Both the position numbers and the translations under genes were made by a program. Under the pieces are notes generated by a model. The model saw only the letters and a list, made by a program, of their open reading frames with translations. It searched no databases and had not been told where the DNA came from. 7,548 bases of DNA from contig JBLWGC010000091.1 of NCBI GenBank assembly GCA_048772705.1, positions 1-7,548 on the forward strand, given 5' to 3'. This stretch comes from Leidyana gryllorum EB-2025a (lineage: Eukaryota; Protista; Apicomplexa). Below are positions 2-6,972 of the stretch, piece by piece (positions within the stretch are counted from its first letter, which is position 1; every line of letters begins with the position of its first letter).

Positions 2-225
2 TCAACAACGAACAATTTGAGCACATTGTCAAAGAGACTTGAATGGTTTCTTCGGGTTATTGACTTCGTGACTCTTCAGAGCCTCAAAGACGCGGCCCTC
101 TCCTCGGACCAATCGACACAAACCTTAGAAGAATGGCTCGTCGCATTGCCACTCGTTGGAACCGCAGAACTCCCGTCTCCACCCGATGAATATCGCGATA
201 TCGCGGCCGAATTCTTTGTTCTCCG
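2..225 (+). CDS. Coding exon (5'-partial) of a large multi-exon hypothetical protein gene
   Basis: Frame is open from the window start (…LSKRLEWFLRVIDFVTLQSLKDAALSS…EFFVLR). It ends at a GTAACC donor that splices in frame to the next ORF. Confidence 0.7.
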
Positions 226-274
226 GTAACCCTCGAAACGGTCCGTTTTGGCCACCATCCGTCTCTGTGCACAG
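226..274 (+). other. Spliceosomal GT-AG intron, 49 nt
   Basis: GTAACC…TCTCTGTGCACAG. Removal gives CG|T (Arg), deletes the in-frame TAA and joins ORF 17..229 to the frame of ORF 156..848 (…FVLR-IMALKM…). Confidence 0.8.
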
Positions 275-819
275 TATAATGGCGCTTAAAATGATAACTG
301 CTGTCTTTGAGACTGTGGAGGCGCACTTCTCACCCGTGGCTGATCTGATGAAAGATCCCAGTGATGAGAATATCCACGAATTACAACGGCTCATTCCCAC
401 CGTATTGAAACCGCTTTTCGGTGATCTTATTGGATCTGTGGCCCCATCTTTTGCGTCTCTCATCGGAGAGGAAATCATTGATCTAAATGCTGCTCTGGAT
501 AGCCGGACGAATAAGGGGGCGGCCACCCACACACACAAATCTCCCGGTACCATGAGATTGGTGTCTGCTTTCCGGTCTTCTCCACCGCAATGGTTGGATC
601 GCGAGCTGTTGAATGCGGCGTCACTCAGACGTTGTGTCGTTCAGGCACGCGACAGCTTGCGGAACGGTCTGGCGCGACTTACAGATGGAGTGCGTCGGCT
701 CATTGATGACGCCGCTCAAGGGGAAAGACTGAGGTCAACACATCAGTTGCTCCTGGATGAGTTGTTCACCAGCTCAAAAGGAGGTCGCAATCTTCTGATG
801 ATCGCCGAGAACTGTCGAG
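275..819 (+). CDS. Internal coding exon of the same hypothetical protein (predicted helical region)
   Basis: Open frame IMALKMITAVFETVEAHF…LLMIAENCR, bounded by an AG acceptor and a GTGAGA donor. Confidence 0.75.
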
Positions 820-886
820 GTGAGACACAGTGCGTGCTCGGTGCCTGAGCTGACGGCGTCTCCCAACCATTTTCCTCCCCTTTCAG
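820..886 (+). other. Spliceosomal GT-AG intron, 67 nt
   Basis: GTGAGA donor, GCTGAC branch site (849-854), pyrimidine tract TTTTCCTCCCCTTTCAG. Splicing gives G|TG (Val) in frame with NDDDILTLFPAV of ORF 820..1218. Confidence 0.8.
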
Positions 887-1147
887 TGAACGACGACGAC
901 ATTCTAACACTCTTCCCAGCCGTCTCGGACAGTTTGTATCTTTTGACACTTCTAGTCAAGGATGACACTGATATGAGTAGTTATGCAGCTGATGTACTGG
1001 AGTCAATATATGAACCGCAGAAGGCTTCGGCCACTACTTCCAGCCCCAAACACACTCGCTCTCCGGCAGAGACTGAGCTCGATGCTGAGAGTGCCGACTT
1101 CTCCCAGACTCTGCTGAGTGATCCCCAGTTGGTTGACACACTTCTCG
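887..1147 (+). CDS. Internal coding exon of the same hypothetical protein
   Basis: VNDDDILTLFPAVSDSLYLL…DPQLVDTLL, followed by a GTATTT donor. Confidence 0.65.
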
Positions 1148-1187
1148 GTATTTTTCACATGTCCGATGCTCGGCTCACTGAGCTCAG
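1148..1187 (+). other. Probable GT-AG intron, 40 nt
   Basis: GTATTT…GCTCACTGAGCTCAG. Splicing avoids the TGA at 1216-1218 and continues as ELISHLKIHFETSDVIKDCLIRP. Confidence 0.5.
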
Positions 1188-1462
1188 AACTGATCAGCCA
1201 CTTGAAGATCCACTTTGAAACTTCCGATGTTATCAAAGACTGTCTTATTCGGCCGTTATCTATCCGTCGACAAGGGGCTGCTGATTTTTAGGACGTTGTG
1301 AAGATTAGGACTCCGACTCACATTCCAACGAGACCGGGGCTCTGCCTACACGCGCGCGGATGATCGCGGGGAGAGAAAAACCGCGGCTCCTGAGACAACT
1401 TGCGCAAAACGGTCACCTAACTCTCAAGCCGCGAGTTACTAATTCAATACATCGATCCACAG

Positions 1463-3586
1463 AGAGTGATGCAGACGACCACACGCGAGCACCACACAGT
1501 TCCATTCTCTCGGTGGACCACAGGGAATGGCGGAAAAAGTGCCAACATTCCCTTGAAGCCTCCAGGGGTGTACGTACCGCTTGTCGACTCATCTGGGAGA
1601 ATTCGACTCCTCGGGTCGTGTGATCCAAACAAGACCGTGAAGATCGTCCCGCCTCCCAGTGTTCACTCGACCTCTTCACTTTGCGAGGAGTTTCGCGCTC
1701 TCATCGAGCGAAAGTTGACACCGTTACGACAGCTCACTGACTCTAATCTGAATCCTCAGGTCGCCCAGCTATTGGCCTCTTTCGTGCACGGCAGCTTCAA
1801 CTGGCGGCTTATTCAAGCCGAGCACTCCCTCTCGGGACAGCTCAACAGCCTAAAGCACTTCGAAACTGCCATCGACTTTGCGAAATCCCGACTGAAACAC
1901 TTTGTCACCACACTGGAGAAAGTGATATCCACTTCGGGCGACATATCGTTACGACTCCACTCCCAGCTCTACTCTCGCGCCCTCGACGAATGTTCGACTG
2001 AGGCTCCTAGAATCTATCTGGCCTGGGAAACTATACAAAAGGAGCGGTTATTGCAACTCACACGAGACCACGCGTCTCAACTCGCATCCCAAGACGAAGA
2101 TCTCACCGCTCTCTGCTCGCAGCAAAGTTTGCCTATCAACAAGTGTGCGAGCGCATCAAGCCCCATGCCGCCAGACGAACAGTCGCTCGTGGCGCTCAAC
2201 AACACATTACAGCTTCCCCCTCCTCCCCCATTCCCAATGACCCTTACGACGCCTCCCGTCTTCCCTCCAACTTCACCTCTTTTGCAACAAGAAAGCGTCT
2301 TTGATGCCGGAATGGGGGATATCTCGTCCCCCTCAGATGTCTCAGAGGAGGCCCCGCTTACCTCTTCTGGGGACTGCGAAGAGGAGTGTACAACATTTCA
2401 GCAAGTGTCTCCCAGGCCTTCCCCCAGGCTGGGCCGCGTGCCATCTCGTCGCGCACCGACAGCTCCCTCTGCTGAGCCCAGCGCGCCGAGTTACATAATT
2501 TCGACGCCCGAGCTCCCCACTGCCTCCACCGCCGAACCCGCTCTCGACCAAAAAGCACTTAAGCCCCCCCACCCGTCTGAGGAGACAGTCAATCGAGATG
2601 AAACGGTTCTGAAGAAGAGCCCTCGGGCTGTCGACATCAAGTCGGACAGAGGGATGGTGACTTCCACCGCCGTTGCAAGGCCTGTGCCCGAGTCATTGGG
2701 GCCCGAAAGATCCTTCGCTGGTCCGCTCGCTCGGCGTCCAGGTGGTGAAGAGCCACCCGACCCTCAGGGGGGACGCCCCGGTCCGCGCGAGAGGGCCAAC
2801 GCCAAAACAGGGCAAATTTCCAGTGCGAAGCGAGAGTTGCGGACAGTCGCGGCACGTGAGCGGCAAGAGCGTCTGGCCCGACTCGAAAAGGTCCAGGAAG
2901 CATATCAGGTCAGACGAAGGGCACTCAGGGAGCGGGTTCAAATCAAGTCCCTGATGCGCTCGCGACCTGTCAGCCAGCTTCCTACACATTCGGCGGATCC
3001 TCAGACTTGCTCAAGGTCTCCTGTTCCTGTCGCGACCCAGACTCTCAGCAATGCCGCTACGGAGAAGGGGCTTCCTACTGCTGAGGGACCCACACTGATC
3101 ACTTCTCCTGCCATAGTGAATCCCCCACACGCCCAAAGGGTCCAGGATGCTGCCAAGGTTAGTCAGTCCCTGGGTGGACCTAAGGTGCCCCAAGCCTCCA
3201 GTGGTCGTATCCCACGTTCAAATGAACGTCGCGGGTGCGTTTCCCGCAGTGGCGGAGAGTGCGATCGACAACTGGGAACTGATCGCATCTGCGGTCGTCG
3301 CAAACCCCCTGTCGCCCTCAACCCCGAGACGCCACCGCCGACTGATAGACCTGCCGTCAAAGAGGTTTCGTCCACGGGAGTCGCCACCAAAGTTGTGGCC
3401 AGGGATGCTTCAATGAGATCTGGTGGGATTCAGGACCTAAGCACATCAGAATTCGAATGTGACGAATCCCTTCCTGGCTCTACACGCCGAGGGGCCCCTG
3501 GCACAGTTGATCGCTTGGCCGTGGCCCCGAACCGCCCAACAGCGGCCAGACAATACAAAAGACGTGTCTGTATAGCATGGAAGTAA
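1463..3586 (+). CDS. Long terminal exon of the hypothetical protein: helical segment, then a Pro/Ser-rich low-complexity region with a short Arg/Glu-rich coiled-coil-like stretch
   Basis: 706-codon ORF ending in TAA at 3586, preceded by a TACTAAT branch site (1437-1443) and a CAG acceptor (1460-1462). The exact connection across 1188-1462 is unresolved, so this could be a separate gene. Confidence 0.75.
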   Translation, partial: RVMQTTTREHHTVPFSRWTTGNGGKSANIPLKPPGVYVPLVDSSGRIRLLGSCDPNKTVKIVPPPSVHSTSSLCEEFRALIERKLTPLRQLTDSNLNPQVAQLLASFVHGSFNWRLIQAEHSLSGQLNSLKHFETAIDFAKSRLKHFVTTLEKVISTSGDISLRLHSQLYSRALDECSTEAPRIYLAWETIQKERLLQLTRDHASQLASQDEDLTALCSQQSLPINKCASASSPMPPDEQSLVALNNTLQLPPPPPFPMTLTTPPVFPPTSPLLQQESVFDAGMGDISSPSDVSEEAPLTSSGDCEEECTTFQQVSPRPSPRLGRVPSRRAPTAPSAEPSAPSYIISTPELPTASTAEPALDQKALKPPHPSEETVNRDETVLKKSPRAVDIKSDRGMVTSTAVARPVPESLGPERSFAGPLARRPGGEEPPDPQGGRPGPRERANAKTGQISSAKRELRTVAARERQERLARLEKVQEAYQVRRRALRERVQIKSLMRSRPVSQLPTHSADPQTCSRSPVPVATQTLSNAATEKGLPTAEGPTLITSPAIVNPPHAQRVQDAAKVSQSLGGPKVPQASSGRIPRSNERRGCVSRSGGECDRQLGTDRICGRRKPPVALNPETPPPTDRPAVKEVSSTGVATKVVARDASMRSGGIQDLSTSEFECDESLPGSTRRGAPGTVDRLAVAPNRPTAARQYKRRVCIAWK

Positions 3587-4005: not shown

Positions 4006-4571
4006 CTGTAGCTCGAACCCGTGGACACGGCTCGGAAGGGGTCGAATGCGCCCCTCCGCGACCCCCTCGACGAGCTCAGGGTTGCATAGAACGGCTAAAA
4101 ATACATGAATGTCAATTTGCAAGAGTAACAGAAGCAAAACATTACAGCTAAGCATTGCTCCCCAGCAGGCAAAATTGTGCACCTCACCAAACCAATGAAT
4201 TCTTGTGTCACTCTCTCCGAACCATTCGCGACTGATCACTCCCGCACGGTTGTTCCTGTTCTAACACCAATCAGCTCGTGATCATCGCCGTGTCGGCCGA
4301 ACTGCTTCCCCGCGCAACCAACGGCCTGCAGAATGCCGAGTGTGTGTCCTTCAAACTTAGCTGCTGTGGGACTCCAAAAGCCGGACGCGGCAACAGCGGA
4401 ATGAATGCTTTATGTTGCGAAGGTTGAGAAATCGGAACTATCAACTCACCGGTAACAAGAGGCCAGCGGCCGCGATCCGTGGTGGCCTCAACCTCCGCCG
4501 CGGGCGAAGTCCTTGCCGTCAAAAGGCCTTCACGTTGAAGTCGGTCGCCCTTAGGGCCTCGGAGAGGCCTT

Positions 4572-4755
4572 CTGGAGAGAGTGTCAGTCCAGTGGCACTC
4601 TTACCAGAATCACCGCCGAATTCACGACGATTGAAACCGTTACCGAAGGAGAAATACCAGTTAAAAAGAGGGGGTCCAATGGACCCCTTCCTTATTTAAC
4701 TAAGGAAAGAACTTTGAATTACAATGGATCTGAGCTAGAAGGCTCGAGAGTGAGT
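4572..4755 (-). ncRNA. U2: U2 snRNA-like gene, divergent variant A (~184 nt)
   Basis: Minus strand reads ACUCACUCUCGAGCCUUCUAGCUCAGAUCCAUUGUAAUUCAAAGUUCUU, colinear with canonical U2 UCUCGGCCUUUUGGCUAAGAUCAAGUGUAGUAUCUGUUCUU. Then stem IIa (UUCCUUA/UAAGGAA), IIb (GGGGUCC/GGACCCC), a IIc partner, an Sm-like site and two 3' hairpins. Ends are inferred. Confidence 0.8.
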
Positions 4756-4779
4756 TTTTGTTGGCGAAGTTTTGCCAGG

Positions 4780-4800
4780 TACCCTGTGTGCGACACACCG
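4780..4800 (-). promoter_or_regulatory. Putative snRNA upstream promoter element (PSE/USE-like) for the minus-strand U2-like gene
   Basis: CGGTGTGTCGCACACAGGGTA on the minus strand, ending 25 nt upstream of the inferred start. Similar in sequence and position to the element of the plus-strand copy. Confidence 0.6.
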
Positions 4801-4822
4801 TTCCGGGACACAGATAGATCGT

Positions 4823-4844
4823 CGGTGGTGTGCCGCACACGGTA
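4823..4844 (+). promoter_or_regulatory. Putative snRNA upstream promoter element (PSE/USE-like) for the plus-strand U2-like gene
   Basis: CGGTGGTGTGCCGCACACGGTA, ending 26 nt upstream of the inferred start at 4870. Confidence 0.6.
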
Positions 4845-4869
4845 TATTCGAGGAATTCTCACCGAGAAA

Positions 4870-5057
4870 ATTCACTCTCGGCCTCACAGCTCAGATCACT
4901 TGTAATATTTAAGTTCTTTCCTTGGTTATGCAAGGAAGGAGACCATTGGTCTCCATCTGCTTACCAGTATTTCTCCCTGGAGTCGAGGCGTGGTAGCGGG
5001 TTTCTCGCACCTGCCTTCTTCGGATCCTCTGAACAGACACTGCATTCGGATGGACCC
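4870..5057 (+). ncRNA. U2: U2 snRNA-like gene, divergent variant B (~188 nt)
   Basis: AUUCACUCUCGGCCUCACAGCUCAGAUCACUUGUAAUAUUUAAGUUCUU aligns with the U2 5' end. Stem IIa 4918-4937, IIb 4938-4954, IIc partner 4959-4967, Sm-like site 4968-4976, stem III ~4985-5018, stem IV ~5022-5057. Length matches a typical U2. Confidence 0.82.
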
Positions 5058-5277
5058 TCCCAACCCCGATGGGTGACATTAGGAATGTAACACTCATTAA
5101 CTGAAGTGAGGCGGAAGTGTGCGAAGTTCAAGTGATCGTCGGCTCCCCACTACGCAAAGAGCTGCCAATCCGGCTACAGGAAATCATCGGAAGACATCTG
5201 ACCGGGTAGGAACAATAGTGTCGGTACTAGGCTTGAACTAGTTTTCACAGGTTTGTTGTCCAAGCATACATCCACAA

Positions 5278-6390
5278 CTACCCTCTTTTTACCCTCTTAC
5301 GGTCCCGCCCCCGGTCGAAGCACCTGATTTTGAATTCGCGCCACTCACAAGAATTTGCCCAGCCATCATCGCCCGGCTTCAAATGTCCACACCATGAGCA
5401 TACTCGTGTGCCTCTGTTCCCTACCCGCCCGAACCCACGGACTGGCAATGGCGTGGAGCTGAGACGCATATGGGACGCTTCAGGGGGTAGGAGAAGGAAT
5501 GAGCGATCTCAGCAACCTGGCGGTTCTGGTAGGTCACGAGCCCATTTGGCGTCTTCAAAAGGGTTGGCTCGTCTTCATTCCACGTAATGCGATGGCAGTC
5601 TCGGAGGCGTTCAGGCGCATAGCGCCGGTATTCATCTTCAGCAAGGGCCACGGTGCGCTTCTTGTCCTCCAGATTGCCCTTCACAAACTTATCGGGACAC
5701 TTCATGCCTCGTTGGCACATGCATCTCTCGTCCGGTGCCCGAAGTGGGATCGGGTGTACAATTAAGGAGGTGTGTGAGCATCGGTTGCGGACGCGATGGA
5801 ACCCATGGGCCTGAACAACTTTCGATCTGCTTGCCGTTGACGATTGGTAACGGCGATGACCAACTTGAGGCCTTCGGCAGAGATGCCAAGAGTACAGTCT
5901 CATTTCCAACCACCTCGTTGTCATCGTCCTCGCTCCCATTCTCCTCGCTCTCGTCGTCAAACAAACGAGCAGTGGTGGTGATCTGATCGACGGTAGTTGT
6001 GGAGACAGCGGACGGTGAGGTATCTGTCAGGATGGAATCTTCATGTTTGACCCGTCTCGAATCCGCAGCGAGGGTCGGGGCCTTGGGACCCGCGCCCATC
6101 CTAACCGCGGTTACTTGAACGGTACTGCAACGGAGTAGTTGGCCTCCTCAGCTGGGGACGGTTGAAGGTCAGTCAGATTTAGCGGTGGTATATCGCCTGG
6201 CTCGGCGTGTGCCCCATCCAAGCTGACTTGATTAACGTCCGCGGAAAGGTTGATGACCCGTGTGGGGTTCAAAAGGCATCTCGACGCGTGACATTCGCTG
6301 TCCGCCTCCGCTCCTCTGATTTGACGGATCGCCGCCCCCGGACGTGATGTGACATTTGGGCTACAGACACGTGCCGTTTTGAGGTCAGAC
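5278..6390 (-). CDS. Probable multi-exon (or frameshifted/degenerate) hypothetical protein gene with an acidic tract and a C-terminal CxxC motif; exon boundaries unresolved
   Basis: Successive overlapping minus-strand open frames look protein-like: …PSPAEEANYSVAVPFK (to 6111), MGAGPK…DDESEENGSEDDDNE… (6099-5689), …KGNLEDKKRTVALAEDEYRRYAPERLRD… (to 5421) and …RVCSWCGHLK…KRVKRG (to 5278). No family recognised. Confidence 0.4.
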
Positions 6391-6654: not shown

Positions 6655-6972
6655 GTGTCCTCGGGTGGAAGGGCGCTCAAAGCTGACTATGAGGGGCCGA
6701 GGCTCTACCAGGTAGCTGGCGACAGCGCTCCCATCGCCCACCTCAGCAAGATTGAGGACATCCTCGATCGCCGAGTACAGCTGCATCAACAAAGGCTCAC
6801 GCCGTTGAGTCCAAGTCCAAAAGCGGAGCCTCTTCGTCCAAATCGGGCTACAACGGACGGCTGCGTCACTATCGGATCACAAGGGCCGTCCTGTCAATCG
6901 GGCTGCGATACCATACACTTCCAACTTTATACCCCCACCTCTTCCTTTCTGCGCTGGAAGCTGCCCGGTTGA
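6655..6972 (+). CDS. Possible hypothetical protein or exon
   Basis: 105-codon ORF with no in-frame ATG and a plausible N-terminal half (KADYEGPRLYQVAGDSAPIAHLSKIEDILDRRVQLHQQRL). No homology recognised. Confidence 0.25.
   Translation: MSSGGRALKADYEGPRLYQVAGDSAPIAHLSKIEDILDRRVQLHQQRLTPLSPSPKAEPLRPNRATTDGCVTIGSQGPSCQSGCDTIHFQLYTPTSSFLRWKLPG

Follow-up and report, generated by a model that had tools for sequence, protein, structure and literature searches.

The stretch of U2 snRNA that pairs with the intron branch site ranks among the most conserved RNA stretches of eukaryotes, and the exception found in the literature is that of the trypanosomatids, which have one altered U2. In Leishmania major, U2 works with UUAUAA in the place of GUAGUA; trypanosomatid U2 also has a divergent Sm site, is of one type, is transcribed by Pol III, lacks stem III and functions in trans-splicing (PMC4950102). 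Animal genomes carry several paralogs of U1, U2, U4, and U5 (human, PMC8457000; Drosophila, PMC4291461); human variant U2 genes coexist with a dominant canonical U2 (PMC8457000), and the spliceosomal variants of animals differ by single recognition bases (PMC8457000; PMC4291461). In Entamoeba, the recognition sequence of U1 has changed together with an atypical 5′ splice site, so that U1 matches one new strict consensus (10.1101/2022.06.08.495308).

The stretch of DNA analyzed here (the window, 7,548 nt) is contig C91 of the 15.5-Mb, 237-contig assembly of a eugregarine apicomplexan, which was searched as a whole. The affiliation follows from a deoxyhypusine hydroxylase (DOHH) encoded at another locus, whose closest named matches are Gregarina sp. 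Poly1 (64%), Gregarina sp. Pseudo9 (63%), and Blabericola migrator (61%), compared with 34–46% for sequences deposited as animal. Its U2 resembles that of trypanosomatids in the A/U-rich replacement of the recognition sequence and the divergent Sm site, but is present in many types with stem III kept, in a genome with thousands of candidate cis introns and a canonical U1 5′ end. Several paralogs each of U1, U2, U4, and U5 recall the animal variants, although none of the gregarine U2 genes is canonical. The likeness to Entamoeba lies in an snRNA recognition sequence altered together with an intron signal; here, however, it is U2 that varies, and the branch signal appears dissolved, not moved. 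Within one cis-splicing genome, the branch-pairing sequence is thus free to vary in sequence and length from paralog to paralog, whereas the recognition sequences of U1, U5, and U6 are fixed. In a literature search largely confined to papers available without subscription, we came across neither a study of gregarine snRNAs nor a description of a genome in which all U2 paralogs diverge at the branch segment.

The head-to-head U2 genes of the window

Comparison of the window with all of Rfam (cmscan) gave two matches only, one on each strand and both to U2 (RF00004) over model positions 1–192 (Table 1). Both are genuine U2 snRNA genes, and the initial annotation, which had proposed a head-to-head pair of divergent U2-like genes, is borne out by these full-length alignments on opposite strands, with gene starts 113 bp apart; the limits that it gave were too short, the genes reaching to ~5077 and ~4544. 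The minus-strand match falls just below the RF00004 gathering score of 46 bits, and the minus copy is the top match of a genome-specific U2 model (82.6 bits, the model having been built from these same sequences). A U12 identity was rejected, as a genome search with RF00007 gave nothing at E ≤ 1 and no Rfam family matches the window better than U2; tRNA genes were likewise searched for in the window and rejected. Both genes are more stably folded than their shuffles (z −2.9 and −3.7), and stems III and IV are present in both, based on the RF00004 alignment and structure comparison.

Table 1. Coordinates of U2 gene features in the window.
Feature	Position	Strand	Remarks
U2 snRNA gene, plus copy	4870..5077	+	~208 nt, ends predicted; RF00004 match 4870-5065, 56.9 bits, E 1.5e-9, then terminal hairpin and GAC
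U2 snRNA gene, minus copy	4544..4756	-	~213 nt, ends predicted; RF00004 match 4756-4557, 43.1 bits, E 3.1e-6
Upstream element TGTGCCGCACAC	4829..4840	+	-41 to -30 of plus gene; likely promoter element
Upstream element TGTGTCGCACAC	4786..4797	-	-41 to -30 of minus gene
U2/U6 helix Ib (GCU) and Ia (GAUC) strand, plus copy	4889..4897	+	GCU 4889-4891, GAUC 4894-4897; pairs with the genome's own U6
U2/U6 helix Ib (GCU) and Ia (GAUC) strand, minus copy	4727..4735	-	GCU 4735-4733, GAUC 4730-4727; pairs with the genome's own U6
Branch-point recognition position, plus copy	4902..4907	+	GUAAUA replaces GUAGUA; GAUC-to-GUUCU segment 15 nt vs 13
Branch-point recognition position, minus copy	4717..4722	-	GUAAUU replaces GUAGUA; segment 14 nt
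Stems, plus copy	4918..4966	+	IIa 4918-4937, IIb 4938-4954, IIc 3′ strand 4961-4966
Stem IIc 3′ strand, minus copy	4658..4665	-	8 bp with own IIa loop; rank 1 among 14 partners
Sm site variant AUUUCUC, plus copy	4969..4975	+	similar relaxed sites in U1, U4, U5
Sm site variant AUUUCUC, minus copy	4649..4655	-	similar relaxed sites in U1, U4, U5
Extra 4-bp terminal hairpin, then GAC, plus copy	5063..5077	+	likely 3′-end signal
Extra 4-bp terminal hairpin, then GAC, minus copy	4544..4557	-	likely 3′-end signal

The GCU and GAUC segments are retained in both copies, as had been noted at the outset. Stem IIc of the plus copy is interrupted, and its cognate partner ranks 2 among 14. AUUUCUC departs from the standard Sm consensus, yet is a U-rich single strand in the right place, between stems IIb and III. 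The spacer holds two copies of a 12-bp motif, TGTG(C/T)CGCACAC, one per gene, where 0.08 would be expected by chance in the window.

The imperfect inverted duplication of ~105 nt described initially stands as a layout, with 85 of 109 columns (78%) identical between the 5′ segments and 62% identity between the whole genes, but not as a history: in a tree, the plus copy clusters with copies on contigs C85 and C183 (support 94/97), apart from its window neighbor. The pair is therefore old or was brought together, and a recent local inverted duplication is ruled out. Since U1 and U5 genes are often head-to-head as well, the layout is an ordinary one in this genome.

Elsewhere in the window, 17–3586 (+) is a multi-exon protein gene with candidate introns at 226–274 and 820–886 and a 706-codon low-complexity last frame; its exons, searched separately, have no Pfam or homologue match. 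Open frames at 5424–6099 (−; probably two exons, with Cys-rich stretches) and 6655–6969 (+) have no Pfam match.

The U2 family and what it keeps

The RF00004 search of the genome recovered 11 U2 loci, and the upstream motif led to further copies. With a genome-specific model, the inventory comprises 15 full-length U2 genes, one decayed copy (C183:13608-13710), and one 3′ remnant (C211:2643-2700). Fourteen of the full-length genes are distinct, with pairwise identities of 44–82% among the ten compared. The RF00004 gathering score is passed by 7/15, a warning that Rfam cut-offs miss most U2 genes of this kind. Set against these 15 variant loci, the count of canonical U2 loci is 0: no canonical U2 5′ sequence occurs in the assembly with up to 3 mismatches allowed. 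The initial annotation had suggested a specialized spliceosome branch; with neither a canonical U2 nor a U12 in the assembly there is nothing for such a branch to branch from, and the bodies of U1, U4, and U5 have diversified too.

Gregarine samples are often mixed, which would make the diversity an artefact of a mixed-species assembly. This reading, which we regard as scarcely credible, is largely refuted by the physical linkage of different variants: two in the window, three on C85, and five within ~3.2 kb on C204. In addition, Prp8 and SF1 are each single copy in the genome, and the U6 copies are nearly identical. On C204 (160376–163509), two of the five variants lie head-to-head around a single, nearly palindromic shared element, and two of the five have GUU in place of GUA.

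The gregarine genes agree with the U2 of RF00004 in length, in the helix Ia and Ib strands, in stems IIa, IIb, and IIc, in the position of the Sm site, in stems III and IV, and in the CAC of loop IV; they differ in the branch segment, the relaxed Sm site, the extra hairpin with GAC, and the divergence among paralogs. In all 14 variants, GCU and GAU(C/U) can form helices Ib and Ia with U6 from this same genome; stems IIa, IIb, and IV are also present in all 14, with several pair types in IIa and IIb. In most copies, widely dissimilar sequences still fold into stems III and IV and the terminal hairpin. Stem IIc, in which the IIa loop pairs differently, to the exclusion of stem IIa, and which the splicing cycle requires (PMC4712673), is absent from the Rfam model and so provides an independent test of structure conservation. 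Cognate IIc duplexes have a mean of −6.7 kcal/mol against −3.6 ± 0.6 kcal/mol for permuted partners (p ~1e-5); the paralogs are related, so that the cells are not independent events, although six or more distinct complementary words are represented.

The covariation of stem IIc between paralogs argues against decay, as far as sequence comparison can tell, and the overall pattern points to purifying selection on U2 genes that are very probably functional. The proposal that the window copies belong to a family of variant U2 snRNAs, as opposed to decayed copies, is upheld by the 15 genes, by stem IIc, by the upstream element, and by contrast with the C183 locus. The latter is what a decayed copy looks like here: it belongs to the C85c/C183 type, its GAUC and GUUCU are mutated, and it has a 3′ deletion and has lost the upstream element, unlike the window copies. 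The window copies do not behave as snRNA pseudogenes, in which random changes at paired and functional positions and loss of the promoter would be expected. The related idea that all these genes are pseudogenes or spare copies, with the real canonical U2 in an unassembled repeat, could draw on the draft state of the assembly, on the score of the minus copy below the Rfam cut-off, and on the non-standard Sm sites. It is very improbable given the compensatory changes in stems IIc and IV across copies ~50% identical and the retention of upstream and 3′ signals; moreover, the assembly did recover tandem arrays of U1 and eight U6 genes.

The upstream motif occurs at the same distance in 13/15 U2 genes, and 12 of its 22 genome matches are at U2 starts; the C211 and C230 variants carry different upstream elements, that of C211 being repeated twice. 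At the other end, a terminal hairpin follows stem IV in the U2 variants, with GAC behind the hairpin in 13/14. A terminal stem with GAC also closes U4 (5/5) and most U5 and U1 genes, and a loose detector of the hairpin and GAC was positive in 40/42 genes, vs 27–33% of random windows. A hairpin with GAC (often GACA) immediately behind it is thus common to all four Sm-class snRNAs (U1, U2, U4, and U5), and is a candidate 3′-end formation signal.

Copy numbers of the other spliceosomal RNAs are at least 42 matches for U1, 14 for U5, 5 for U4, and 8 for U6; the U1, U4, and U5 bodies are divergent. U1 genes (for example, C216:5002-16060; also C12, C33, C35, C82, C85, C152, C159, and C186) combine an invariant 5′ end with divergent bodies, and include one 342-bp tandem array and repeated head-to-head U1/U5 pairs. 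The U6 genes sit within repeated tRNA gene clusters.

For U2 in relatives, a pattern scan of metagenome contigs gave 5 matches, all of them chance, and the scan of genome and viral contigs gave none; contigs of other gregarines, reached via the DOHH gene, have no U2 on them. A homologue search with the proteins adjacent to the U2 genes found none. One contig filed under the mite Dermatophagoides farinae (GCA_024713945.1:JAMLFS010000020.1) carries a gene that ranks among gregarine proteins, and shares a DOHH–PFK gene order with a gregarine contig; based on these sequences, it is probably gregarine DNA within the mite assembly.

Branch-point recognition sequences and introns

GUAGUA is absent from all 15 full-length U2 copies, and eight hexamers take its place: GUAAUA (plus copy of the window), GUAAUU (minus copy, C85c, and C183), GUAUUU (six copies), GUAUUA, GUAAAA, GUAAAU, GUUUCA, and GUUUUA. 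The second G of GUAGUA, which is the partner of C in UACUAAC, is lost in 15/15, and the G two bases ahead of the GUAGUA position is U here. The segment between GAUC and GUUCU, of 13 nt in the RF00004 consensus, has 13–17 nt. A and U predominate in the 3′ half of the recognition sequence, and this half varies in both sequence and length. The missing GUAGUA lowers the case for a canonical U2, not that for a U2, since the U2 of Leishmania is also without it.

The variable segment has invariant flanks, UUGU before it and AAGUUCU after it. [quoted passage not shown] The 5′ end of U1, loop 1 of U5 (14/14), and ACAGAGA of U6 are invariant in every copy retrieved, which leaves the branch-pairing sequence as the only one that is free among the intron-recognition sequences.

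Introns appear to be short. Ras and proteasome genes are interrupted by gaps of a few dozen bases, and de novo prediction at the retrieved loci gave about a dozen plausible introns. The pattern GTRAGT-N28-42-YAG has 7940 matches in the genome when no branch motif is required, and among the matches listed it follows one strand through gene clusters, as expected of real introns. For the branch site, donor–motif–acceptor combinations were counted genome-wide with a motif required 4–18 nt before YAG, and chance rates for the motifs were taken from 161 kb of the genome's DNA; scrambled motifs served as the control, the reversed pattern being unsuitable since the reversed donor is commoner. CTRAY gave 674 matches (chance rate 0.0312; corrected 21.6k), TTRAY 651 (0.0270; 24.1k), and RTRAY 1290 (0.0571; 22.6k), compared with 511 (0.0295; 17.3k) for the scramble CYART and 991 (0.0380; 26.1k) for YATRY. 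In these genome-wide counts, C is not preferred at −3, and TRAY does not clearly exceed the scrambles; nor did a shifted consensus, with T or A at −3 to match GUAAUA or GUAAUU, gain support over the scrambles. A strict yeast-type (CTRAY) branch site is excluded in the short introns. Because true and chance donors are mixed in the counts, these are compatible with a weak, human-type (yUnAy-like) branch consensus. Human branch points are loose too, yet GUAGUA is kept (PMC13019295); degenerate branch sites alone therefore do not force a change in U2.

Proposed placement of U2 and a U2-associated retrotransposon

We favor, at a probability of about 0.55, the reading that the window genes are ordinary U2s of a major spliceosome that places U2 by the 5′ splice site, YAG, and proteins, so that the branch helix has been released and the paralogs drift. 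Transcription of each U2 gene would be driven by the gene's own upstream element; the window pair would be read divergently out of the 113-bp spacer, and transcripts would end at the hairpin–GAC signal. The U2 snRNP would then be set on introns of 40–50 nt mainly by the strong 5′ splice site, YAG, and proteins, with base pairing between U2 and the branch site amounting at most to a GUA toehold. With selection relaxed over the remainder of the branch helix, unhomogenized paralogs would drift there while structure is preserved through compensatory changes, and the variants would be largely interchangeable. The presence of an SF1 gene fits a protein-guided placement of U2. Against this explanation, pure drift does not account for the invariance of UUGU(A), human U2 keeps GUAGUA in spite of loose branch points, and, the assembly being a draft in 237 contigs, a canonical U2 could be missing from it.

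Alternatively, the variants might not be interchangeable, each suiting a different A/U-rich branch sequence or life stage, so that the family jointly covers introns that have no one consensus. We entertain this tentatively, given that eight hexamers and lengths of 13–17 nt are kept in genes otherwise under purifying selection, that two variants alter even GUA to GUU, and that the C211 and C230 variants differ in their upstream elements; an engineered U2 with a changed recognition sequence does redirect branch choice in human cells (PMC13019295). Yet no intron class that would match a variant came to light, ATRAY, GTRAY, TTRAY, and CTRAY being about equal and not above the scrambles in the genome-wide counts, and one upstream element is common to 13/15 genes. 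Furthermore, the bodies of U1, U4, and U5 are equally divergent with recognition unchanged, so that divergence needs no specialization.

The gregarine genes amount to a naturally occurring allele series with which to ask how much U2–intron pairing branch selection requires and what the BSL tolerates, and these alleles could be tested in existing yeast or human orthogonal-U2 assays.

A third explanation concerns a single-copy, Utopia-like non-LTR retrotransposon in the region C211:2643-8672, behind an intact U2. Its ORF of 1795 aa has a C-terminus that matches R2 proteins (E 1.6e-16) over the CCHC and PD..D region, and features of a restriction-like endonuclease and a C-terminal zinc finger are present in the alignment to R2 proteins. 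At its 3′ side lies the U2 remnant, which starts in the register of nucleotide 39–40, the Utopia/Keno site. The insertion site is inside the variable branch segment; among the U2 variants, the remnant corresponds to the C211 type alone. Insertion at this site could thus have selected protective variation there, at a cost made affordable by loose branch recognition. We consider this unlikely: there is one element and one disrupted gene only, and U1, U4, and U5 diversified without such a target. Elsewhere, Utopia coexists with a highly conserved and unchanged target in oomycetes and wasps, although many of their U2 genes are disrupted by it (PMC4640811). Relaxed pairing, division of labor, and escape from the transposon are not mutually exclusive; a compound version, in which at least 14 U2 snRNAs divide introns or life stages among them without one branch consensus, possibly set off by escape from the retrotransposon, is as tentative as the division of labor by itself.

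The C211 element resembles Utopia in its R2-like endonuclease region, in its 3′ junction at U2 nucleotide 39, and in the intact U2 upstream, and Phytophthora has the same layout of Utopia at U2 (PMC4640811). It differs in its alveolate host, which is absent from the list of that paper, and in its target, a non-canonical U2 variant. Assigned by the endonuclease region and the junction, it extends Utopia-like elements to an apicomplexan. After the U2 remnant follows a second, diverged copy of the front part of the element.
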